A stretch of 61,333 nucleotides of DNA, the filler included, from Bipalium vagum (taxonomy: Eukaryota), in the NCBI GenBank assembly GCA_037834085.1. It is 3 parts of 3 records of this genome, joined end to end, with 100 filler letters (N's around TTAATTAATTAA, not from the genome) between each part and the next. Parts side by side here need not be neighbours in the genome. Positions count along the whole stretch, not along the records: positions 45,077 to 61,333 come from JBBMKC010120170.1; 2 more parts are not named here. One strand, given 5' to 3'. The translations under genes and the position numbers were made by a program. Positions 45,077-61,333 of the stretch are shown here, piece after piece (position 1 is the stretch's first letter; every line of letters begins with the position of its first letter). Below the pieces are notes generated by a model. The model ran no database searches. It was not told the origin of the DNA and was given only the letters and a program-made list of their open reading frames with translations.

Positions 45077-45222
45077 TAAATGTTTTTCGTTGTACCGTGA
45101 TATTAAACAGGTCGTGATATTAAGCGAGGTGATATTAAACGGGTTACACTGTATCACTTTAAAAGGGTCCGATTAATTATATCGTTATATCCAGAAAATC
45201 GTATTAACCAACTTTCACTGTA
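45077..45222. mobile_element. Two adjacent pogo/Tigger-type termini
   Basis: Three gtgatattaa(a/g)c subterminal repeats then ..ttacactg-TA (45151); second ..tttcactg-TA near 45220. Confidence 0.55.
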
Positions 45223-45463
45223 ATATATTTAGATAGATAAAAATGTTAATAAAAAACAAAGACATCAGTAATATTTATTTAAATGATGTACAAAAGTAAC
45301 TAATCAAAACTTACCATTTCTTTTTATATGACAATTCGCCAATATAATTTTCTAAATCATTATTTTAATTTGTTCCTATTTTCTCAATATAAATAATAGG
45401 GATGCACAAAGTTAAAAAAATTTCATTTTGTTATGTTATTTTTGATGAATAAAAATATTTTTA

Positions 45464-46060
45464 GAGTTAAAAAACTGATTTATGGTTACATATGTTAGTT
45501 AATACGTTTTAGAGAGAATATTGTTTAAATTGACTGACGAAGATCTTGGAAAGAAATATTTAAGACATCGAATAAATGATTCCAAAATGAAAACATAAGT
45601 CTTGATGACTTCAAAATGTGTGCCAGGCGGTCATTGGTGGAAAATCAAAATTTGATACAATTGATTGAATCAGATCAGGAGCAAAGTTTTGAAAAGTTAG
45701 CTCATAAGATGTCAGTCAGTAGAAAAATCATAAGAGACTATTTATTTGAAACCAGAAAGTCTTTTTGTCCATATATTTAGATACCATAGAAAATAAGTGA
45801 AAATCAAAGATCTTTAAGGATTCCACTTAAAAATTCAATTTTGATTTTTAAGGAAAAGTTATTTATGTATGTATAAAAATTCACATAAAGAAAACAACGG
45901 CTAAATCCGGATCAATCAGTGCTTCCCATTCAAAAACCAAATTTTCATATAAAAAAATCATTACTATTTATTTGGTGGTATTTTAAGGAACCATTGCATA
46001 TGATACTGTTGGAATGGGAACAAACGATTAACAATGAATTATAAATAATAGAAACAGAAA
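45464..46060 (+). mobile_element. Highly decayed mariner remnant
   Basis: LNPDQSVLPIQKPNFHIKKSLLFIWWYFK resembles the mariner K..LH.KKVMLCVWWD region. Confidence 0.5.
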
Positions 46061-46375
46061 ATGCACACTTCGAGATTTAAGGTAAAAATTTTGAAAAATT
46101 CACCACTTCACTTCCTAGATTGTCACATGTGTTAAATACTTCTTAAGAGATTAAACTTACAAAAGTTTAGAAGATACGAAATTGAACTGCTCTAAGTATT
46201 TTGATGAAAACCAACACAAATCTGGCATGGATGGGATTAATTCTTTGGTGAATATATCGCAAAGGTTATTAAAAATTATACCAATAATAAATGATGGTCT
46301 TCTTGATAATAAATAAAATAGTCTTGATTTTGACATAAAATCTTCTCATTACTTTTCTGCACCCTTAATATTATA

Positions 46376-46460
46376 CAGTAAAATCTGTCAATAATGGGCA
46401 CCACTGCGACCGAACATTTAGTCCAAAATATATAGGTGTACAAATTAACAGGTTTCACTG
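46376..46460. mobile_element. 85-bp pogo/Tigger-type MITE
   Basis: TA-cagtaaaatctgtcaa ... ttaacaggtttcactg-TA (16-bp TIR, 3 mismatches). Confidence 0.7.
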
Positions 46461-46723
46461 TATTTATAATCCTATAAAGACAGGAACGAATGGTTCAAAA
46501 CATCGAAGAATATTTTATTTCACTTCATTTAGAAGCGAAGCTCTAACTTTTATTTGATTTCATATTATTGTGTACTGTATAAAAATGTCAAATTTTAAGA
46601 GATACCCCAGAATTATTTACCATCATTCAATGTTTTAATTTACTCATTAGGAACATTAGGAAATATCTGAAATATTATTTCAAAACAATTTTGCAAAAAT
46701 ATTATTTTAATTAATTTGTCCAG

Positions 46724-46912
46724 AAATTACAAAAGGAACAATTTAATCGAAGACAACGGCAAGATAGGTGGAAAAAGGATGCTTTAGAAGACAGGGATAT
46801 GGATTTTAAGAAGGACAGTGTTGATAAGCCTTCTCGTCCCAATTTAGACCGTTCAATTTCCTTAGAGTTGAAGCCTGCTGATGTGAGATATGATGATCTT
46901 TTTATGGAGGAG
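46724..46912 (+). CDS. Internal exon of an unidentified gene (KLQKEQFNRRQRQDRWKK...RPNLDRSISLELKPADVRYDDLFMEE)
   Basis: tttgtccag acceptor, gag|gtaagt donor, 189 nt open, coding-like composition. Confidence 0.75.
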
Positions 46913-47163
46913 GTAAGTACCATGTATTTAAAAACACGTTTCAAAATATTTGAATGTTTATATTATTACTTCTTTTCGAGAATCATGAAAATAAAATTAT
47001 AATTATCATTATAAATGTGTATAATTATAATAATAATTACTTAGTAATTAGTAATAATAATTAACAGTCAAAAGAAAATAATAATTAATTATAATAAAGT
47101 CAAACTGAACCGGGTCTGTTCTCAAATATTTATTATAAAATTAATTAATATTTAATTTTTTAG

Positions 47164-47208
47164 GAAATCTTTTGTCCGAGCACAAATATCAATTCAATTC
47201 CGACAAAC
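47164..47208 (+). CDS. Penultimate exon of the same gene (EIFCPSTNINSIPTN)
   Basis: ttttttag acceptor, gtattt donor, 45 nt, phase 0 at both ends. Confidence 0.55.
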
Positions 47209-47251
47209 GTATTTTATTTATTTATTTTACGGATAATTCTTATTTTTCCAG

Positions 47252-47332
47252 ATGATCACCTTTAAACCGCAAATATTTTCTAATGAGGATGAAACGGAAA
47301 ATAATTCCAATATTGATGAAACCACCAATTGA
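47252..47332 (+). CDS. Terminal exon of the same gene (MITFKPQIFSNEDETENNSNIDETTN*)
   Basis: tttttccag acceptor after a 43-nt intron; TGA at 47330-47332; aataaa ~20 nt downstream. Confidence 0.6.
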   Translation: MITFKPQIFSNEDETENNSNIDETTN

Positions 47333-47989
47333 GTTACGAAAAAAGAAATTTTAATAAAATATGTTTCTATTTTAATTTTTTACTTTAACTAACTATTTTA
47401 TTCAGTAACTTTTCATTTTAAAAGCCAAAGTTAACAAATATCATTATTAATATTTATAGTCTAGTTATATATTAATACTTTAAGTGCTAATCCGACTCGT
47501 TTTATTTTAAATGGTTAGGCTAAATATTAATCCTGTGTGCAAATCAAATTTAAATAAGGAATAAGAAATATCTGTAGAAAGAAAATAAATTTTTTAATCA
47601 AAACTTAATTACTGATATACAATTGGTCAACAAGATGCTGGATAAATACTTAATTATTGATGTCAAAGTCCCATTTGAATTTGAGGTCTCTGTCAGAGTT
47701 AATGACGAACCAAACAATTATAAGTATCAGATTATACTGGACGAACACAAACTAAATTGGAAGAAAATATCAGAAAATTTATAATCGGATTCTGATAATC
47801 GTGTACCCCGTTAAAATATCAAACACTCAGAGTATTATGATTTAAAAAACAGTAATCTATATAAATATATAAAAATTTAGGTCGTCATCATCACCCATAA
47901 TATTATGAAAAAAAGTTGTAACCAGAGCCGATACAATCACCTAAAATTTCCCATGTCAATGACGACCTATCCTTGATTTGAAAATAATA

Positions 47990-48660
47990 ATTTAAAGTAT
48001 GCTTTACAAAAGGCAAGGATGACTTTAAATATTTTTGTACTTGGTTAAAACTTTTTAATGAATCTTTAATTGAAGAACAAAGGAATATTGTTTTGACTTT
48101 GGATAATGTACCCGTACCCATAATATTGATTTATTGTTCATACCACCAAAGACTTCTTCAAAAATTCAGGCATTATGTCAAGGTATAAGTTGGTTTTCTA
48201 AGCAGCAGGATAAAGATTCTGTTCAGAAATTTAATTTTTGAGTCGGAAACCACAAATACTGATCATGAATTGGGAGTTTAAAATGTTAAATTTATAAACA
48301 CAGTTCATATCACAACACAAGCATGGGAGAATGATTCTATTGTGCTAATTATTAATTCCTTCAACCATTCTATCAAAAATGCAGATCGATTAAACCGAGA
48401 TAACAATTAATATGAGCGATCATAATGACTTTCCGCCATATGATCCATTATAATATGACGATAATGACTTTATTTCAAAGATTAATGCGAAAATTTCAGA
48501 TGGTAGTTACTTTTTAAAGGAACCAGTACAGAATTTTACGATTTCAAAATGATGCATATTTTACAGTTCAGAAATAAGACATTTTTTTCTGAAAAATATT
48601 ACTGATAAATTGAAAATAAATAAGTTAAAGATAAATTTTTAGCCGACAGAAAATCACTAA
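47990..48660 (+). mobile_element. pogo/Tigger DDE_1 transposase remnant
   Basis: RNIVLTLDNVP and FIPPKTSSKIQALCQGI (cf. LPPNTTSKLQPLDQGII). Confidence 0.65.
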
Positions 48661-49908
48661 ATCTTACGACGATTGATTACGCAATTATGAATTAAAAACG
48701 TTTTGTTTTTTCATTGGATAATAATAGACAGATCTGACTGTAACTGGTTTTATTTTTTGTATTTACGCAATAAAAATGTCAGCAAATGTCAAAATGTTAT
48801 GCAATTAATTATAAGGAAGAAAACAACTAACCGAAACTGCATTTCAACCAGTTTGTCTCATAATAGAAACTCAAATAAAACCATGTTCGTTCTTAGTGCC
48901 AGTGAAACGATATGATTCACGGTCAAATGACTTTAATAATATAAAAAATAATTCAAACTGAGCACACAATTTATACAAATAATCAAATAGTTTTAAGTAA
49001 TAGTCAATCGTGAATCAAATCAAATGAAATTTAATGGCATAAAATATCGAAATGAACAGAAACAATAGCTTAGTTCGAGACCCACGATGTCTAATGCTTA
49101 CAAAACAAAATTCCTTCCAGGCTGCATTAACTGCCCACTAGAGCAACTCGTCTTGTTAGAGCTTCAACGACATACTGCAGTTCTCTGCTATAATTAGGAC
49201 TTATTTTAGAGGTTCTGTTGGATTCCTGTGTTTTACATTTATATTAAACGTCACATTAATTTTATTTATTTTTTTAAAACATCGACATTTAGGCCTTTTA
49301 ATTAACAAGAAAAATAATTGATTAGTGACAATTTCATATTTGTAGCATAATTATGAAGACATCAAATAGTAACTGGTGGAACGGATATTTATCCCAGGTA
49401 TTGATAAGTTGTGAAAAATATGGACAAATGTTTCATCTAACAATGGGAAATATTGTTTATTAAAATTTAATAATATGTTTTCAAAAAAGTGTTCTGATTT
49501 CTTAAGAATCCGCAGAATTAACTGCTACATCTAATAAATATTCATTTTACTTTAAAGATACATGATATAATTCGAATCAGCTTTCCTCTGTTAAGGTAAT
49601 TAATTTAATAATATTTGATAATAAATAATATATAGAATATAAAATGGAAAGATTTTATTAATAAAAAATAAAATATTCATATACTGACATAAAGTTATTT
49701 TCTGATCAATATTTTGTGTCCCCACAATATTTCTCTTTTATTAATTATCTGAAATTTTATTTATATTTTAAAATTTGATGTTTCATTTCATCAATTGGCA
49801 GGAAATAGAAGTAACATTGATATTGTTTTTTTCATAATTTCCGTCAATTTCAGTAACAAGTTTCTGTAAACAGATTCTCGTTAAAGCATCTGTTTTCTCT
49901 TTATTGTT

Positions 49909-50040
49909 NNNNNNNNNNNNNNNNNNNNNNNNNNNNNNNNNNNNNNNNNNNNNNNNNNNNNNNNNNNNNNNNNNNNNNNNNNNNNNNNNNNNNNNNNNNN
50001 NNNNNNNNNNNNNNNNNNNNNNNNNNNNNNNNNNNNNNNN
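49909..50040. other. Assembly gap (132 N)
   Basis: Plain N run with no linker. Confidence 0.97.
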
Positions 50041-50672
50041 AATTTTAAAATTGACACAAAATCCACTAGGATTTTATCAAAGTTACTTTTTAACTTATTA
50101 TATAAAATTTTAATAATTTTTTATTTTAAATAAAATAATAATTTTCTCAGTACTGTTTTCCAGGTTTCGGTTGTTGGTGATATTTGTCAGTTGGAATCGT
50201 TTAATAATTTATGAATAAAGGAAATTTCATTTACTCTGAAAACTGCCCGAACCCATTTACTTCCCTTTTATTAAAATTCAATATTCTTAATTTATTGACG
50301 TTATATTCCTTAAATCATACATGGAATTTTCAGCGAAGTCGGCCAAATGTGAATTTATGATGATCTATATGTAAATTTACAAAATTTAATTTTTATGTAA
50401 ATTAATTAAAACAATAAATATATTCTGAAGATATCATAATTATTCGTTTTCATACGAAAATCCCACAATAGGTCAGATTTAAATAATTATTTTAATTTTT
50501 TCTAAATATTTATCAATTTAATATTTTTATGCAAAATAACAAATTACCAAATATAAAATATTATTTTTATTTTATTAAAAAATAATACTTTCTTTGCCTA
50601 TTTTATAAGTTAAAAATGTTGAAATTAAGAAAAATAATAATTGAATATTTTATTGAATTTATCCTTACTTTA

Positions 50673-51322
50673 CAGGGTGTATAAAATGTACGTATCAGAT
50701 TGTGGGTCAATTTAATTTTAAATGTTTTGAAAATTTTTTTTTTTATGAAAAATTATGTAAGCGTTTAATTATTTAAAGTTAAAATGATCAGAATCAGATA
50801 AAAAAGGAACCGAAAAAAATTTTCAGATTTATAAAGAGCGTCCTATGATATCTGACGAAATGCTGCTAAAAAGAACTAAGTTTATGAAAAAGAACATAAT
50901 TTGTCTTAGAACAAGATCAAAATTAACTTCTCAACAGGATGGAACTCCTGCTCATAAATTATTATTGAAGTTAGAATTTTTTTAAACAGTACATTTAACA
51001 GAAAGTGGCTTGGGAGAGAAGGACTATTTAATTGGGTTGCTGGATTACCAGATTATTTTTCAATAGATTATTTTCTTTGGAGATACCCAAAATAACAAAT
51101 TGGGCAGCTAAGCTATCACCACAAAATTTTAAACATTCTATGACATTTTTTTCATTCATAAATTACAATATTGTATTAGTATTAATTGATGCTCTGTTGA
51201 AAAATATTAATTTTTTATAAATGTATTCAATATTTCATTGCTTCAAAGATTTATAGTGTTAACCTCAGTATATTTAACAGTATTAAATTTTAAAATCCGA
51301 TACTTACATTTCACACACCCTG
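50673..51322 (+). mobile_element. Internally deleted DUF4817/DD37D-type element
   Basis: TIRs cagggtgtataaaatgtacgtatcaga / tccgatacttacatttcacacaccctg; QQDGTPAH, KWLGREG..W, DYFLW. Confidence 0.8.
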
Positions 51323-53492
51323 CATCTCAACGCGTTAAGTTAAAAATTGCATAACGCTTCGTTTTCGAAAGACCGAAAATTGTTCTTAAGTAGAAAATTT
51401 AAAACTGGTTTATTATTTATTATATTATTGTGATGAGAAAATATCATCAGGTAATTCAGTTTTGTACTGGAAAAAATTGATTTTCATATTCTTTAGTTGA
51501 ACCTAAATTGAGAAAAGGGAGGGTTTTTGTTAAAATATTAAACTAATATTATAAATACGATTTAGTAATATTATTAAACGATATTTTATAAGATTCGATA
51601 AAGGATGAACATGTTTTCCGAATGGATATTCATTATACATTTATATTTTCAGTTCATTGACAAAAGGGAAAGGTGAATAGATTTATTTCACTTTCACTGA
51701 CAATTATTTTAAAAAAATTTAAAATAAAACTTTTTCATCTGTCTTAAAGAAAAATGTTAAATAAATAATCTTCTATCACCGATGTGATGACATTTCTTGT
51801 ATCCTTAAAAAGAATTTATACAAACGAAACGGAGTTATATTTCAGAAGAATTGAGAAATATTTTTCTTGTAGAAATTGTTTAGGGTGTAATGTATTTTAT
51901 CCATTAAACGTTTTTTTATGAATAAACAGCGGTCATTTTATAGTCTGTAATAAATAACGAAACCCACAGGTATTATAATGTCTATGTAATATTTCTTGTA
52001 ATAATATTAATGAAAAAAGTTAACTAGGTGACAAGTCAATCAAACATCGAATTAACTTAACAAATAATATGATGGGGTTTTCATTTTAAGGTCGTCTCTT
52101 ATCTTGTTGAAGATATGAAAAATGCAGGGACTACTTAAGTAAGCAGAAGTGAGTTACTTAATTACTTGGAGGACTTAAAGAAACATTATTTATTTATTAA
52201 TTCTTTAAATTGTTTAATTAAACAACAAAATTCCTCGGTGTTTCACAAGTCCCTGCTGAAGTTTTTACATTTATTTTAATTTTATAAAATATTATGATAG
52301 AGACAGAGATACAACGTAATTTTATTATGGTTGTTAATGTTACGAAAGACTGGCTGTTTAAATAGAACATTCTTCAGTTTAAGGTTTATTAAACTGTTGT
52401 TACTATCAACATGTTCTCGAGCTAAGTATAGATTTTATACCATAGTGAAAAACGGAAAAAACAAAAGATGTATAAAAAGATTTCCTTTTTAATTTGCTCA
52501 ATTTGTTTAACGGTAAAAAATTATGCATATTCAACCTGGAGTGATCATCAAAGGAAATAATCAAAGATAAAAATTCATGAAGTGAATCTTTGATCTTATC
52601 CTTAAATAAACCGAACACATTAATTATAAATTAATATTATTGTGTTAATTTTTACTCTCAAATAAAGAGATTTTTGTTTTCCTGCCTTTTCAACAGTTAT
52701 TATATCCTGGATGATATATACATTTTGATAAAAATTTCAATAATAAAATGTGCTTTTGACAATTATTATTAATAATAATAATTTTATTATTAATTATCAT
52801 TACTGCTTAAAGGAATCGTGATAATTTGTTTTAAAATGTTAAATTAATTCTCTCACGGTTAAAGCTGAAATTAAATATCAAACAGTCATTTTCAAAGGTG
52901 GTAAAATTTAGCTTTAATTAATTAAAATTTATGTTATAATTTTATGTTTAATTAAAATTATGTGTCTCGTTAATTATTTCGAAATTATTGACAATTTTTG
53001 TTAGGGGATATATATTTTAGCAAAAAACCAAAGTCTTGATAAAATAAAGAGAAAACGAGCAAATCTATGAAAACTTGTAATTTCGCAATCTTATAGGTTT
53101 TTTGTATTATTTTAGTAGGTTTTCCTAGATGAAATTTAAAACGATAATAATTTCCTTAATTAAATAATTTATCTTATTGAACAATCGATATTAATTTGTT
53201 ATTAACTAAAAGGGCTTAATACGCTTAACATGAATGAACAACAAAAGGAGAATCGGAATATCCATAATTACTTTCAATTGATATTTTGTATTATCTATAT
53301 TATATATATTCAATGATTAAAAAGTTAAACAAAATCATCCATATTGTAATGTAACGACCTCAGCTAAACATCAAACAAACTAATGGAAATATATTGAATA
53401 AAACAATGTATAACAAATTAATTAAGCGAAGCCTACAAAATGATATCAAAGTTACACAAATTGTGTTTGTTTAAATGCATCATTAAAATAAA

Positions 53493-53629
53493 ATGTTGTT
53501 TATAAATATTTTGCGAAAAATGCTAACTGTTTTAATAATTTTGATTAACTTTTTTCAAAGTTATAACCTGTTGGGAAGAAAATCCCACGATATAATAATA
53601 GGAATTCATTTCGGAGAAAAGTATATGAG
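53493..53629 (+). CDS. HSP70: Divergent BiP-like Hsp70, exon 1 (signal peptide + degenerate phosphate-1 loop)
   Basis: MLFINILRKMLTVLIILINFFQSYNLLGRKSHDIIIGIHFGEKYM(R). GIHFGEK occupies the GIDLGTT position. Donor ag|gtaact (phase 2) joins in frame to 57691. Alternative start ATG at 53520. Confidence 0.8.
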
Positions 53630-55607
53630 GTAACTATATTTATTTACTATTGAAATCTGTTCAATATTGTTTTTCGATAACAAAAAAGAAAAATGATGTT
53701 CATAAAAATATTCCATTAATCCTTAGCATAATTCTACTTATTTCTCATTAGTTTTAATTAATAATTTTCCAGCTTATATCGCCTTATGAAAATCTTTCTT
53801 CATAATAACTTATTTATTAATAATTATAATGGGATTAAATCTGAAAAAGGAAAACAAATTTTTGAATCTAAAAATACAATTTGATTTAATCTAAGTCTAA
53901 TAACGTTCATTGCAAAGACTGGCCTTCGAGTCTTCCCATGTAATGTGACGATTATCGTTAATATTTAACGCTCGTCTCTCGGGAAGCCGGAAATTAAATT
54001 TTAATATTTTATCCATATCGAAGCTGTAAAATCCGAAAGAAAAGTCTGAGAAAAAAGATTAATAATTTTTCTTAGTCCTTTCAATGACATTTTACAATTT
54101 TGTTTTTATTGATTAATTTGATCAATTGTTCGATGTTACAATTATTCGATAAAAGTGAAATGTGAGGTGTACCTTAAAGGGATCAATGTATTCCAACAAA
54201 TTGTATTGTGGTTAAACATGTTCGAATATAAATATTGATTAAAAATAAAATCTCAGGATCAACAAAATTTATATATATTATTGATTATTTAAATTTATAT
54301 CTTCAAAATAGGCTCCACTTTTAGGATTTACCTATTCCAACGAATAAATCGATTGTTGAATAATTTAATGTTTCCATCTTTTAAAGTGTGCACTTATTGT
54401 ATTGTAAATAATAAAAGTAACCACTGGTTCCATTCACTGGTAATACCGTAATAAAGTTTTCAGTCTAAGTGATTAAAATTTTTGAAAATCTTAAGTTTCC
54501 TGAACGATAAATACTGGGCTTAAACGGTAAAAGAAGTCAATCAAGCTTTTCTTATTTTTTTTGTTCCCCCTATAAGGATCGATATATTGAGTAGATTCAG
54601 CACATAGTGGAATGCTAATTTAAGATAAATAAATTTAATTTTGAAAATAAGTTATCCTTTACTTTTCTTTTATGTATTAGGTTGTTTAGAAATGAATTTC
54701 GGTTTTATAAATCTATTTTTTTAACGTTAGTGTACCATAATTTTGTGTTGTTTTAATATATTTTATATATCATTTTAAAGCGTGAAATTTAAATTATATT
54801 TAATAATAATTAAAATAATTTATGTTTATGATAAAAGACTTGCGTATTAGATAACAAATTTGAAGTATTATAAGACTTCTATAATATTGGTTGTCGACTC
54901 ATTGAGAAATACAATATAAACTGCCCAATAATTAAAAGAATACTAAAAATGTAACTTGTGAGTTTTCTTCTCTCAGGAGTTTGAGGACTATTGATTTTCA
55001 TATTTGTTGATAGTTTTTTGGTCATACTTTATTGTGAGATTATTGGAAGTTACAAGGTATATGATTAAATTTTGAGTGATTAATAAAATTTGTTGTTTTA
55101 AGTAATGTTACTGAAGGGATTTTTTGGATCACAACAAAACAAAGTTAGTAAATAGTGAGATTAGTACTTTAACACAGGGTTACAATATTTTGTTACATTA
55201 AAATATATGCTATTAAATTCAATTTTTTAGCCTTTTATTCTTTTGAAAGAGTAATTTCTGCATTTATTATTGAATAGATAGTTTTAAATATAAAGAAATT
55301 TCATACACTGCAAAATTTAATGAAAGGTATACATATTTTATTCGTTATAGTTTTACTATACAATTATTTCCTCTTAATATATATAAAATCTAATTATAAA
55401 TACTTAGTACAACTGTTGTCAGCACAATTAAATTTTATTAAACTATTATAAAAATGGGAAAATGTTTATTTTCCGATGAAGAGAAATTTAATTCATAACT
55501 GGTTTAATTCTTATTGACACAACCTAAAGTCTGAAAAATAAATTTAGATGGCTGGGAACTTTGGTGGTTCTATAAGGACCCGGACCTATGAATAATCTGA
55601 ATGAATC

Positions 55608-56634
55608 TGTTACGCAATTTTTTACTATGACCACTGTCGTAAGACTTAGCTCACAAAGCTTACTGATCCTTTCACTTTTGTCAGTACGTGTACGCAAAAG
55701 AATGAATCAAACAACTACGAGCAACACTATTGCTAAAATAACAATAACAAAATATTTCAAATAATCAATAAAATGCCTGCAATCAATCACACTGAAAATC
55801 AACGTCAAGAATAATAATCAATTAAATTAAAATCAAATAATTAAATACCAATATCAATTAAATGTCAGTAAAATTAAATATCAATTAATTTAAAAAGAAA
55901 AAGCACAAAATCAAGATAATCTCACCACTTTTGACGACAGGTCCAAATGGTTGTTTGCTGAACCAAACCCGGTTCGCTCAGAAACCACCAAACAGCATAG
56001 GACCAGCTATGAGCTCCTATCGCATAATATAATATAATATAATAATAATATAATATAATATAATAATAATATAATATAATATAATAATAATAATAATATA
56101 ATATAATAATAAGAATTTACAATTTGAAAATCTTCGGATAATTGCAACAAATTGTGGGTCTTTTGACAAAATAAAACCAAATCTTTTTGATTACTCTTCT
56201 GACAACCAAAAATAATAATTCTCGATCTTTCTTCTCACAACAAAATAATAATAATTCCCGATCTCTCTTCTGTGACAATCCACTGCGGATTCCAACTCCT
56301 TATATACCATTTTGATCAGACGACTAATCAGTCGTAGATCCGCTTGATTAATGGGGAATGTCGATTCCCTTTTTAAATCGATAATTCTAAATCGGTCCCT
56401 CCTTGCGGACCCTGGTCTAATCTTGGCAATTTAGGTTCGCCATTGTCAAGATTAGATCATTTTTGGAAATAATTAATTGCCATTTTTGTTTGAATGTACT
56501 TTTTAATTATTATTTTATTTCTGACCCTTTCGCTTTCTTAATAACTAATTGATGATAACCAATCTAAACCCTATTGCGGTCTCTAACATGCTTTTACAAG
56601 GGTTTACACGGATGTGTCCTTGGCTAACCCAACA
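55608..56634 (-). mobile_element. Solo LTR (1027 bp) in the Hsp70 intron
   Basis: TGTT..AACA ends flanked by 4-bp duplication aatc (55604-55607, 56635-56638). TATA-like ggtatataagg on the minus strand at 56298-56308. Internal (AAT/ATAAT)n at ~56025-56112. Confidence 0.7.
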
Positions 56635-57690
56635 AATCTGAATATCTTCCTTCAACTCTTCAATCAAATTTGGCAGCAATTAAAGAAGGAATTAAGAAAA
56701 TTATGATACTCTTCCGAGTGGGTTGTTGCCTTCTTGGCTGCGTTTCAACTGGTCTTGTAATTTAAGTTTATTCGAAATACATCAGCAGGTCACTACGTGG
56801 TTCGTTTCTAACATCATTGATTATAACTTAGTCCAGGGCATGTAATTTCAATTTTAGTTTCATATAAATTTACCCTTTGTATTTTGTCTTCAATCCTACA
56901 CTTTCTATTTCTCTAATCAAATTCTGAGAAAGATGAAAGTAGCATCTCTTTAAAATTGTTTATACTTGACATAGATATTTGATTTTAAATTTAATTTAAA
57001 AGTTTGTCTTTTTATGGACGATATAAAGGATATTAAAACAACGGCATTACTATTATTAAAAAACGAACTTACAATTTGAAAACACTAATATCAATAAACT
57101 ATCACTAAGTGAAATCTTGAAATTCGTTTATCTCAAATTACTGAAATCATTACAAAAATAGAATTTTGCATAAGGTTCAAACTTGTAAGATTTCATCTAA
57201 GCAAACCTGAGACTATATAAATAATTTCAATCTAAATTTAGTATTTTAATATTTTTTAAAATGTTTTTGAAAAAATTAATTTCAGAGATTTAAAATTTCT
57301 TATTATAACTTAGATTAAATATTCTTTAATTTTATTACTTTTTATTAACAGTACATACATTTACTGAATTGAAAATATTCTATTAAACTTAAAATGTAGA
57401 TTGTTTTTCAGCTTAATATAAAAATGTATGAAAATACAATCTGATAAGACTAAAATATTATTTGAGAATTACAGAAAAATGACGTTGATGAAATAAGAAT
57501 AAAATAATTTTATATTTAATTATTAATTAAACACAAAAATTTAATTAAAAGCTTTGCTTGTTTTTTTATCTAATACACATTAATGAAAATTGCTAATATT
57601 TTCTCAAGAATTTTTTCAGGAATAAATCGCATTTGAATAATTTTTAAAGGCTTTTATTTAATTTATGAAGTTAAAAAATCACTGTTTTAG

Positions 57691-59467
57691 ACTGTCGATA
57701 ATCAAAAGCGGATACTTAAGTATCATTCCAAATACTTTGGGTGATCTGAAAACCCCGATAGTTGTAAAATTCAAGAAAGATGGACGTGCTCTTGTTGGAA
57801 GAGAGGCAAAATATTCTCGAGAGGGATCAACGATTATTGATAATTTGCATAAAATAGCGGGGAAAACATTTGAGGAAATAATAATAATGAAGGAATATCC
57901 TTTTCAGTTTGAAATTTTCGGAAAATATAACAAACCACACATCCGGGTCACCTTGGAAAACAAAACCTTTTCACAAACCATAGAAGACATTTTATCAAAT
58001 GTCTTTAAGTATGCAAAAATTAGTGCTGAGAGTCATCTACAAGTTAATGTTAGTACAGCTGTTATGACATTTCCGGACCATTTCTCATACTCTCAGATAC
58101 TGTCTATTAAAGCAGCAGCAAATATTGGAGGTCTGTCTATAATTAAACATGTCACAGATTCAATGGCAGCAATATATGCCTATGAATTCAATGAGCAAGA
58201 TGAGGAAATGAATGTCTTGGTCTTAGATATTAATGAGGAAACTTTTAATTTGGTTGTCATTGGTTGTGACAATCATGGACAAGAAGTTATAGGATGGAGA
58301 TCCATTATACAATTAGGAGAAATGCACATGAGAAAACCTTTGGAAAGCTATTTAGTTTCAATGTATGAAATAAAGAGAGGATATATTTTGAGAAATATTC
58401 ATATTGTTAACAATATTAAAAGAATAGTCAAACATGCCATACACGAACTCAGCACGCAGAACTCATTTGAATTTTCTTGGGGTCTTATGGAGAGTAATTC
58501 TACGGATACTGAAGTGGTAAACATATCGAAATTTAATGAGTTGATTTTGGGGACTGTGGACGAGTTGCTGAGTACAATGACAACTTTTTTAAAAGAACTG
58601 AATCTTAAGCGATCAGATATTTCCAAAATTATTCTTTTAGGATCAAGTTTTACAATGAGAAAGCTGCTCTTAGAAATTCAGAATTATTTCTATGGAAATG
58701 AATTAACATTTGATAAAGGTTTACTTGAGACTCCAATAATAGGAATAGCAAAAATTGCATATTTATCAAAAGAAAGGAATGAACCCCTGAATGTTGTGTT
58801 ACCGGATCTTTTACCTATGAATTTGGGAGTCGAAGTTTTCAATGGAATATTTGATGTAATAATTGATAGAGGAACTGTAATACCCGTTAAGAAATCGAAG
58901 TTGTATACAATTACATTCAATAAGCAAAGTAAAGTGAGATTAAATTTTTTTGAGGGCGAAAAGACAATGACAAGATATAATGTTTATTTGGGAACAATCA
59001 CATTTAGAAGACCGGATGAAGGATTAAGAAGTATGATTTTATTTAATGTCCAAGTTAACATAAGGGTAAATGGTGAAATTTTCATCACTGTTGAAGATCT
59101 GTCAACAAATATAGTGAAAAGCTTAAAGATTTTGATAGATTGGAGAGAGGCCAGGGAGAACTACAACAGTCAGAACATACCCATGTCTGAAGAGAAATTA
59201 GAAAAAGACCGTCAAAATAACGAGTTTCAGGAATTGAAAAGAGATATCGAAAGTATTGCTTTTGAAATAAAAGCTCACGTGGAAATGAAAACTAATATTA
59301 TTGAAAAGATACAGTCCCCAATTGATTTAAAGATTTTGAAGGAATCTGCAAATGAAGTAATTCAGTGGTTTGAAAATCATTCGGTAAAAGATATGGATGA
59401 GTTAAGAAAATTGCAAAGTAGATTTCACAAAAATGTTAAACCAATTTTGTCCAATGCCCTTTTATAG
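57691..59467 (+). CDS. HSP70: Divergent BiP-like Hsp70, exon 2 (NBD + SBD + lid); ~637 aa in total
   Basis: Long ORF collinear with Hsp70: AVMTFP, DLLPMNLGVE, IDRGTVIPVKKS, FFEGEKTMT..N..LG, NG.I.ITVEDLST, VIQWFENH, VKPILS. Acceptor tgttttag at 57690, so the ATG at 57665 is probably intronic. Confidence 0.9.
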
Positions 59468-61333
59468 TTTAGACCTTTTTTGGTTTTATTGTTTAAATGT
59501 TTTTTATAATCTTTAAAAATTTATCTTTCACAGTTTCTATGAAAAGGTCTAGATATCCATGGTTTTCCAAATGAACTAAATGGTACTGAATATGCTGGGT
59601 ACGTGGATGTTGTATTTCTAGTGTCGAGTTGACTCAGATACACTCTTATTCTTTAGACCACTGTACATGATTGTTAATGACGTATTTTAATCTCTTTTTC
59701 ACTCCTCACCAAATCCGCAAATATAAAGTTAAAGATTTTTTTATTAATTTTTACTTTGCATGTAAAAATTGCATTCTTCATATTCATATTCTTCATTTTC
59801 AAAATGAAATACGTTTTTTCACAAAAAGCATCACAAGGTGATCAACCTTCTCAAAAAATCATTTAAAAGTTACATGTGGTATAGATAAAAATTCCTTAGA
59901 TTCGTAAAGAAAAAAAATAAAAACAAGTCCATGAAATAATCTGGATTAAACAATTAATGTATGAATACGAATCCTATTGAATCTGTTTTAAATAACGACC
60001 TTTAATGACATTTTTACACATAGTTTTTTAAAAAATTTATAAACCACTCCGTTTTTGCAGCATTTTTCTTTTTTTGATTAGAAGGACATTATTTGTCAGA
60101 TACATAAGTATGTGGAAAGAAGGCTTCATTCTCGATTACTATTTATAATTTGATCAGAGTTGTCATCTCTCATGATTTTTGATGAAGAAAAAAGTGAAGG
60201 ACCAAAAAGTGAAATTGGCGAGAAATTCAAAAAATTTTTGTAAAAGAAGAAAGATGAATAGTCAAAAATGAGATGCGTACTAGAGATAATTTAAGCAAGC
60301 CGACTGTACATAGTTTGATAGAGAAAATTGAAATCGGAAAAGTGAACAGTCGATTCATCCTATGTTTTTTGACAGCCTAAAATCGAGAAAATTGATTGCA
60401 AGTGTGCAAAGAAAATTTTGTTCATTATTTTTGGAAGAATATTGTACTATAATGAATGGGATATCATTGAGTCTTTATGTGCCAAATAACAACCATGAAT
60501 CTTGTAAATGGGATTTTCCTCAGAAAAGTCACCAAAAATGTTTCGAATCAGAGTGAACACCGCTAATAGTGATAGAGGTCATTTAGAAGAGAAAATATCC
60601 TTTTGTGTGCTTTACAATTTTAATAAAAAAAATTAGAACAAAATTGATTACGTCTTTCACATCATATTTGCACAATAATAATAAGAAGAAGAATAAGAAT
60701 AATTGCATCTCCTTCTTCTTCAAATCTAAATTAACTAAAGGAGACTGATTTTTAAAAAATTTCATTCACGGTTAGTTAAAGAAATTAAATAAAAAAATTT
60801 AATTAATAAGAATTTCAAATTGATATTTAATTGATCAATAAATTACATAGGGAAGAAAACAATAAAAATAAGTTAATAATTGCAGAGTAAAAAATGTGAA
60901 ATTAGAAAATCAATATTATTTGTGTAATTTATTGACATTATACAAATAAAAATTTTAGTTTTCTCCTGAAAATTTCACTTTTTTTTACAAAGTTACATTA
61001 ATTAAATCGATATTAAAAGAAACTTTTTAAAAAAATAACAAAATTGGAGACATTTTAATATTGTTCTTTTGTACAAACAAATAGCATTTTTATATAAACA
61101 AGAACAAAATAAACATAAGTCTATTCAATATCTATTTTATCCTCAAGAATATCCTCAATACATAACTTTATAATGTAGAATAAAGGTTCTTAAATATTAT
61201 AAGTGATATCAAGATATAGATAAAATTTCAGTTTAGCTATGCCTATTAAAATTTTAAAAATCAATTTTTAATCAATAAAAATTTATTTTATAACATTTAT
61301 CTTAAAATGGATACTGACAATTTATTTCAAGAA

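Follow-up and report, generated by a model that had tools for sequence, protein, structure and literature searches.

Few proteins are as conserved as the Hsp70s, whose function is commonly held to require an ATP cycle. Can a full-length Hsp70 be maintained by selection once most of its nucleotide site has been replaced? This question is raised by a gene in a 61,333-nucleotide (nt) stretch of DNA from Bipalium vagum (GenBank assembly GCA_037834085.1), hereafter the window, in which three parts of three genome records are joined by filler letters. The piece under study (positions 45077–61333, record JBBMKC010120170.1) is AT-rich eukaryotic DNA with a windowed GC content of 16–34%. It carries a predicted two-exon gene for a full-length Hsp70. 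The encoded protein, termed the window protein, belongs to the Hsp70 family by sequence and fold, and most of the canonical residues for Mg-ATP binding and hydrolysis are replaced in it.

The predicted two-exon gene

The gene model comprises two plus-strand exons (53493–53629 and 57691–59467) joined across a 4061-nt GT..AG intron. The coding parts (137 and 1777 nt) add up to 638 codons including the stop and encode a predicted Hsp70 of 637 amino acids (aa). The features of the gene are as follows, with a slash marking a splice boundary and NBD and SBD denoting the nucleotide-binding and substrate-binding domains.

53493–53629 (+), exon 1: ATG at 53493, signal-peptide-like leader and degenerate phosphate-1 strand; ends in phase 2 (..TAT ATG AG/GTAACT)
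53493–53576 (+), predicted signal peptide MLFINILRKMLTVLIILINFFQSYNLLG: 28 residues, with a basic n-region, a 12-residue hydrophobic core and a small residue at −1
53630–57690 (+), intron: 4061 nt, GTAACT...TGTTTTAG, 25.7% GC, with an ATAAT microsatellite and other low-complexity repeats
57691–59467 (+), exon 2: rest of the NBD, linker, SBD-beta, helical lid and TAG stop; in frame at 57692–59464 (591 aa)

Exon 2 lies in the longest open run of the piece, 601 codons; the next longest has 97 codons. Stop codons occur at 7.7% per codon in this piece, and the runs between stops average 11.9 codons over six frames. An earlier note on this DNA had described a frame open for about 637 aa, and the gene model gives exactly that length. 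The Pfam HSP70 profile (PF00012) is matched over positions 13–595 of 599 with an E value of 3e-61 (207.8 bits against a cut-off of 20.6). Solved Hsp70 structures match the long open reading frame (ORF) over residues 11–596, with BiP in the PDB at 3.6e-62.

The long ORF (57665–59467, plus strand) does not contain the first strand of the NBD. The plus strand matches the pattern G[IVLM]x[FLIVM]G only once within 12.6 kb upstream of exon 2, at 53601, and this match is located in a 46-codon ORF that starts at 53493, directly before an in-phase GT donor. The donor AG/GTAACT (53629/53630) and the acceptor TGTTTTAG/A (57690/57691) generate the split codon AG/A, which encodes Arg. The resulting junction, ..GIHFGEKYM-R-LSIIKSGYLSII, is collinear with BiP without a gap, residue for residue. 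The span 53493–59467 assigned to the gene by the earlier note is right, but the end of exon 1 is 53629 rather than the in-frame TAA that closes the 46-codon ORF. Exon 1 (53493–53627) and exon 2 (57692–59464) were analysed separately. None of the intron ORFs shows Hsp70 similarity, Pfam searches with exon 1 and nine other ORFs of the piece gave nothing significant, and no tRNA or Rfam feature was detected in the piece.

Replacement of the nucleotide site within a retained fold

To locate the changes in the protein, exon 2 was aligned with eight canonical Hsp70s ranging from bacterial DnaK to vertebrate BiP, and site residues were numbered after P0004, a BiP-type sequence. The alignment also includes P0001, a 590-aa metagenomic ORF from Metaclust and the one near relative of the window protein. 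Exon 2 covers 104 of the 113 columns that are invariant in the eight canonical sequences, and the invariant residue is retained in 49 of the 104 by the window protein and in 44 by P0001. Seven motif changes that had been listed beforehand were each reproduced by translation at fixed coordinates.

53601–53621 (+), phosphate-1 loop: GIDLGTT to GIHFGEK; the Mg/phosphate Asp becomes His, and the two Thr become Glu and Lys
57848–57865 (+), catalytic-Lys motif: KRLIGR to HKIAGK; Lys becomes His (Glu in P0001)
58154–58174 (+), NEPTAAA to TDSMAAI; the catalytic Glu becomes Asp in both family members
58226–58243 (+), phosphate-2 loop: DLGGGT to DINEET; three Gly become Asn-Glu-Glu (Ala-Glu-Asp in P0001), and the next Asp becomes Asn in both
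58313–58333 (+), LGGEDFD to LGEMHMR, from alignment and translation
58637–58660 (+), adenosine motif: VGGSTRIP to LGSSFTMR; LLGSSF is shared with P0001 and belongs to the family's second most conserved stretch
58724–58753 (+), PDEAVAYGAA to LETPIIGIAK, from alignment and translation

These positions presumably have the roles in Mg-ATP binding and catalysis that the published structural literature on Hsc70, DnaK and BiP assigns to them. The catalytic Lys, K97, is replaced by His in the window protein and by Glu in P0001, and the Glu of NEPTAA, E202, by Asp in both. The phosphate-2 glycines G227–229 are changed to NEE and AED, respectively, and D232, the Asp that follows this loop, to Asn in both proteins, so that the motif of the window protein reads DINEETFN. 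G256 is replaced by Glu and Ser. In the adenine/ribose helix, E294 is Lys in both proteins and K297 is Ile in the window protein and Gln in P0001. In the adenosine loop, the second Gly (G365) is Ser in both, and R368 is Thr and Ser. The conserved Mg-ATP and catalytic residues of the family (DxGTT, Lys, the NEPTAA Glu, DxGGGTxD and GGxxR) are thus not kept in the window protein, and P0001 exhibits the same classes of change, with the segments DIAEDS, LLGSSFSIP, FDEAPAIGIG and SRDAISAI. Residues D225, T230, G255, S301, G364 and E393 of the site are still present.

The replacements introduce two to three acidic residues into the phosphate-2 loop and one into the phosphate-1 loop. Because acidic side chains now occupy the positions at which glycine loops cradle the beta and gamma phosphates, ATP hydrolysis would be lost, and phosphate binding very probably would be lost as well.

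The remainder of the Hsp70 architecture is retained, including the interdomain linker and the substrate-binding beta domain, which the first inspection of the sequence had called recognisable, and also the lid.

58790–58813 (+), interdomain linker NVVLPDLL (canonical DLVLLDV): both members retain the hydrophobic VVL and the Asp
58814–59140 (+), SBD-beta: conservative residues at the hydrophobic pocket and arch positions; PxKKS, EGE, LG, R(G/S) and NG landmarks present
59141–59464 (+), helical lid: ends in ..KPILSNALL and contains PIDLKILKES.NE.I

The linker of P0001 reads YVVLPDIL. At the pocket and arch positions, the window protein has V/V/F..Y/T..Q..V/L and P0001 has I/V/Y..F/N..Q..I/I. The lid segment PIDLKILKES.NE.I is the best-conserved stretch of the family, with 13 of 15 residues identical.

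An AlphaFold2 model was generated from exon 2 only, using a 74-sequence alignment, and hence does not contain the first strand and the phosphate-1 loop. The model (mean predicted local distance difference test score, pLDDT, 88.6; predicted template modelling score, pTM, 0.73) adopts the full Hsp70 order of elements, with a two-lobed actin-like NBD, a beta-sandwich SBD (eight beta strands at residues 378–480) and a helical lid. Blocks over the rewritten loops have pLDDT values of 93–95, and weak segments are observed only in the linker region (57) and at the start of the lid (47–49). The best Foldseek matches of the model are BiP, Hsc70 and DnaK, each with a probability of 1.00, and the lowest global root-mean-square deviation (5.6–7.0 Å) is obtained with domain-docked AMPylated BiP. 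Little weight is placed on the modelled conformer because the alignment is dominated by canonical sequences.

Selection, relatives and ancestry

The relative P0001 was the only near relative in a HMMER scan of 1.84 billion representative proteins (E 9e-150, 44% identity). The next-best match had an E value of 4e-60, and all others were at most 29% identical. P0001 starts one residue past the exon-2 boundary and stops at most two residues from the stop of the window protein, and its ends are therefore consistent with the same gene structure. A word-indexed search with exon 2 returned only P0001 and two generic Hsp70s. No closer relative was found in a search seeded with P0001, no match with an SBD-plus-lid query aimed at short fragments, and none in two metagenome-contig scans. 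Scans of viral and prokaryote genomes yielded only generic Hsp70 or DnaK sequences at 24–28% identity, a phage tblastn search only DnaK-like matches at ~25% identity, and an ESM Atlas feature search nothing beyond generic eukaryotic Hsp70 clusters. Apart from P0001, current protein databases appear to contain essentially no member of this family. No Hsp70 whose nucleotide site is fully degenerate in this way was found described in the literature searched.

Two further observations were made during the searches. Ordinary Hsp70 homologues are present in L001 (10001–11824; IMG/VR uncultivated viral genome, UViG, 3300037312_001161) and in L002 (GVMAG-M-3300009161-71, by name a giant-virus metagenome-assembled genome); they are 24–26% identical to the query and unrelated to the family of the window protein. 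P0010 and P0017 in the representative set are fusions, P0010 joining a GFP-like sequence (MVSKGEELFTG..) to a canonical EEVD Hsp70, and the public protein collection therefore includes synthetic constructs.

Comparison of the two family members indicates that the gene is under purifying selection. At 45 columns, a residue invariant in the canonical Hsp70s is changed in both members, and in 23 of the 45 the new residue is the same. The rewriting therefore predates the split of the two lineages and has been kept since. Identity between the window protein and P0001 is even across the domains (NBD, 44%; linker and SBD-beta, 44%; lid, 41%). The best-conserved 15-residue segments include the rewritten adenosine motif KRSDI..I.LLGSSF (12/15) and the segment after the rewritten phosphate-2 loop (11/15).

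Moreover, the 56% amino-acid difference between the two proteins corresponds to ~485 replacements. With a nonsense share of 6.7–8.3% of non-synonymous point changes, calculated from the exon 2 codons, 35–44 stops would be expected under neutrality, and neither ORF contains one (P ~1e-16 to 1e-20). Identity between the two proteins decreases from 55% at canonical-invariant columns to 48% at intermediate and 37% at variable columns (55% versus 37%, Fisher p 0.002; NBD alone, p 0.015), and constraint after the split was therefore site-specific. The proposal that this is a selected gene rather than a pseudogene is borne out by the missing stops, the shared rewritten states and the equal identity of NBD and SBD.

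The description of the protein as BiP-like is supported in part. Human BiP is the best-scoring sequence for both family members, at 214 and 216 bits compared with 173 and 182 bits for HSP70-1A. With the NBDs alone, the scores are ~124 and 134 bits for BiP and 93 and 108 bits for HSP70-1A. The 36-residue extension that precedes GIxxG also resembles that of BiP, whereas cytosolic Hsp70s have 5–8 residues there. A 38-taxon tree does not add to this support: the pair falls in a polytomy within the eukaryotic clade of endoplasmic reticulum (ER) and cytosolic forms, clearly outside the DnaK and mitochondrial forms. On balance, descent from BiP is probable, though not established.

Descent from a cytosolic Hsp70, with a leader that was acquired later or that is not a signal peptide, is the less probable origin, although it has points in its favour. 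A 22-taxon maximum-likelihood (ML) tree of slower-evolving sequences groups the pair with cytosolic Hsp70s with a Shimodaira–Hasegawa-like approximate likelihood ratio test (SH-aLRT) support of 98. The columns that distinguish ER from cytosolic forms split 1:1 and 2:2 between the two signatures, group hidden Markov model (HMM) scores tie for the window protein, and neither member has a KDEL signal. Against this origin, human BiP outscores every cytosolic Hsp70 by 34–41 bits for both members and by 26–31 bits with the NBDs alone, and the leader of the window protein has a hydrophobic core before GIxxG, as in BiP. An approximately unbiased (AU) test does not reject a clade of the family with the ER forms (delta lnL 4.8, p 0.23), and because the stem of the family is so long (3.7–4.9 substitutions per site), the tree placement is prone to long-branch attraction.

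The ends of the protein bear on its location. Kyte-Doolittle means over 11 residues reach 2.7–2.8 at residues 10–21 of the leader and are below 0 from residue 19 onward. The C-terminus reads ..KPILSNALL in the window protein and ..NAFHF in P0001, with neither KDEL/HDEL nor EEVD. Because a hydrophobic leader is combined with the lack of KDEL/HDEL, entry to the secretory pathway without KDEL retrieval is the likeliest route. N-x-S/T sequons occur five times in the window protein and three times in P0001, with no shared positions.

Possible functions outside the ATP cycle

The reading that we favour, which we hold at about even chances, is that of a functional, lineage-restricted Hsp70 paralogue that has lost its ATPase and binds clients independently of ATP in the secretory pathway, and that is possibly secreted. 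The N-terminal leader would direct the protein into the ER. The NBD would serve as a fixed structural module, coupled via the retained linker to a competent SBD. The linker and the SBD-beta pocket would still bind extended hydrophobic peptides, with no nucleotide-driven release, which would make the protein a holdase or carrier that works without ATP. Without KDEL, it might be secreted, passed to a post-ER compartment or held by a partner.

Several points weigh against this reading. Holdase activity is pure inference from the sequence. The signal peptide was judged by hydropathy alone, the family has two members only, and no heat-shock element (HSE) or ER-stress element (ERSE) was found in the window. 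Moreover, the surviving site residues may allow residual binding of adenosine or ADP.

An extended form of the favoured reading is tentative and, in our estimate, unlikely to hold in full. The window protein would be the founder of a secreted or post-ER family of nucleotide-free Hsp70 pseudo-chaperones, in which the Glu side chains gained by the two phosphate loops (one in GIHFGEK, two in DINEET), together with nearby basic residues, would fill the phosphate site and lock the NBD-linker-SBD in one allosteric state, turning a cycling foldase into a constitutive extracellular binder. If true, evolution would have produced a protein that imitates a single Hsp70 conformation with no ligand bound.

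Comparison with known kinds of Hsp70 places the window protein closest to BiP (GRP78/HSPA5). BiP is its best-scoring solved relative and has the same domain order and length without large indels, a hydrophobic leader before the first NBD strand, and the same hydrophobic linker and SBD-beta landmarks. However, the window protein and P0001 are only 26–28% identical to BiP, most of their nucleotide-site residues are replaced, the window protein has no acidic tail or KDEL, and monophyly with the ER Hsp70s is not recovered. By comparison, a vertebrate BiP has ~65% identity even to a cytosolic Hsp70 (P0004 versus P0010).

Ssz1/HSPA14, atypical Hsp70s of the ribosome-associated complex, offers the concept of an Hsp70 that has left the ATPase cycle and serves as a structural partner. 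The adenosine motif of Ssz1 may have drifted in a direction similar to that seen here. Ssz1 still binds ATP, and its SBD is truncated and degenerate. Ssz1/HSPA14 are cytosolic proteins that lack a signal peptide, whereas the window protein has a leader and a complete SBD and lid. Ssz1 chains appear only at Foldseek ranks 48–49 with 14–18% identity, which reflects generic structural similarity, and Ssz1 is not among the best 60 phmmer matches in the PDB for either family member. Hsp110 and Grp170 resemble the proposed protein as holdases that are independent of ATP hydrolysis on an Hsp70 fold, with an ER member in Grp170. They are much longer, contain SBD insertions and an extended C-terminus, and need bound ATP, in contrast to the window protein, which has canonical Hsp70 length without insertions. 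HSPA13/STCH is a relative of Hsp70 in the secretory pathway with a signal peptide and without KDEL, and the window protein, with its predicted signal peptide and no KDEL, resembles it in this respect. According to PMC12692333, Hsp70-13 lost its C-terminal domain; by that definition, the window protein differs in having a full SBD-beta and lid and a degenerate ATPase site.

Among the alternatives for function, the one that survives best, although we think it unlikely, is that the protein regulates the canonical Hsp70/BiP system or acts in it as a decoy. In this role, it would titrate J-proteins, exchange factors, stress sensors or BiP itself, or serve as a scaffold for them. By analogy with Ssz1 as a stable J-protein partner, a fixed NBD-linker-SBD arrangement might imitate BiP in one of its allosteric states. 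Within the family, conservation of the NBD equals that of the SBD (44% each), and the best-conserved stretch is the surface helix of the lid (13/15); these two observations together suggest protein–protein interfaces. The basic residue at the position before NEPTAAA that we take, from published DnaK and BiP work, to be the J-domain-contacting Arg is kept as Lys in both members. The AlphaFold2 model also has a defined interdomain arrangement (pTM 0.73) nearest to that of domain-docked AMPylated BiP (5.6–7.0 Å), but the choice of this conformer follows from the canonical sequences that were aligned. Furthermore, the piece does not encode a partner, Ssz1 is only distantly related in sequence (14% identity at Foldseek rank 49), and the hydrophobic pocket of SBD-beta is kept as well, which would be needless for a pure decoy.

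Non-canonical nucleotide binding without hydrolysis, in which a nucleotide acts as a structural or regulatory ligand as in Hsp110/Grp170 or Ssz1, is improbable. Landmarks of the ASKHA fold do survive, here numbered D179 and T184 of phosphate-2, G317 (the first Gly of the adenosine loop), G351, E346 and S254, in a fold that is predicted with high confidence. However, the phosphate-1 Asp and both Thr, the catalytic Lys, the three phosphate-2 glycines, E294 and K297 are changed in both members, and the phosphate-2 loop has gained its two or three acidic residues. The non-hydrolysing Hsp70s known to us keep their glycine loops.

The lost catalytic motifs and the very long stem branch (3.7–4.9 substitutions per site) would also fit a pseudogene in decay or an Hsp70 relic whose frame stayed open by chance, but this reading is very improbable given a 601-codon frame in DNA with a mean stop-to-stop run of 12, the intact start codon, splice sites and stop position, a relative that is open over 590 aa with the same ends and, between the two, zero stops against 35–44 expected, site-specific conservation and derived states that both members share and conserve. 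A homologue of the giant-virus or closterovirus type was rejected, as the gene has a 4-kb intron and the piece otherwise has no long ORFs; the known viral Hsp70 homologues of these types keep their ATPase motifs.

The surroundings of the gene contain several minor features. Upstream, at 50845–51130 (+), a decayed transposase relic extends across three frames, reading ..SQQDGTPAHK.. and then ..RKWLGREGLFNWVAGLPDYFSIDYFLWRYPK.. We take it to be of the Tc1/mariner type from its likeness to the QDxAPxH ... WPxRSPDLxPxDFFLWG end of such transposases, and it suggests an animal-type, repeat-bearing genome. At 45616–45780 (+), a 54-aa ORF matches the Pfam helix-turn-helix profile HTH_11 weakly and below threshold (E 0.0019); it may be what is left of the N-terminal DNA-binding part of a further transposase copy. 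At 49909–50040, 132 consecutive N represent either an assembly gap or a masked stretch. Within the intron, the ATAAT microsatellite occupies 56024–56116 (16 copies, 92% matches), a 36-nt tandem duplicate occupies 56194–56271, and GC skew is strongly negative over 55577–56576; the 4-kb intron may contain an inserted repeat element. Just downstream of the gene, two slightly GC-richer patches at 59521–59643 (−) and 60077–60576 contain short ORFs of 40–64 aa without a family match and could represent the 3′ untranslated region or an exon of a neighbouring gene.

A full-length Hsp70 in which most site residues are replaced and which is selected in at least two lineages would show what uses the fold has without ATP. 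A natural protein frozen in one allosteric state would be useful for the study of interdomain coupling, of J-protein and sensor binding, and of extracellular Hsp70 biology.

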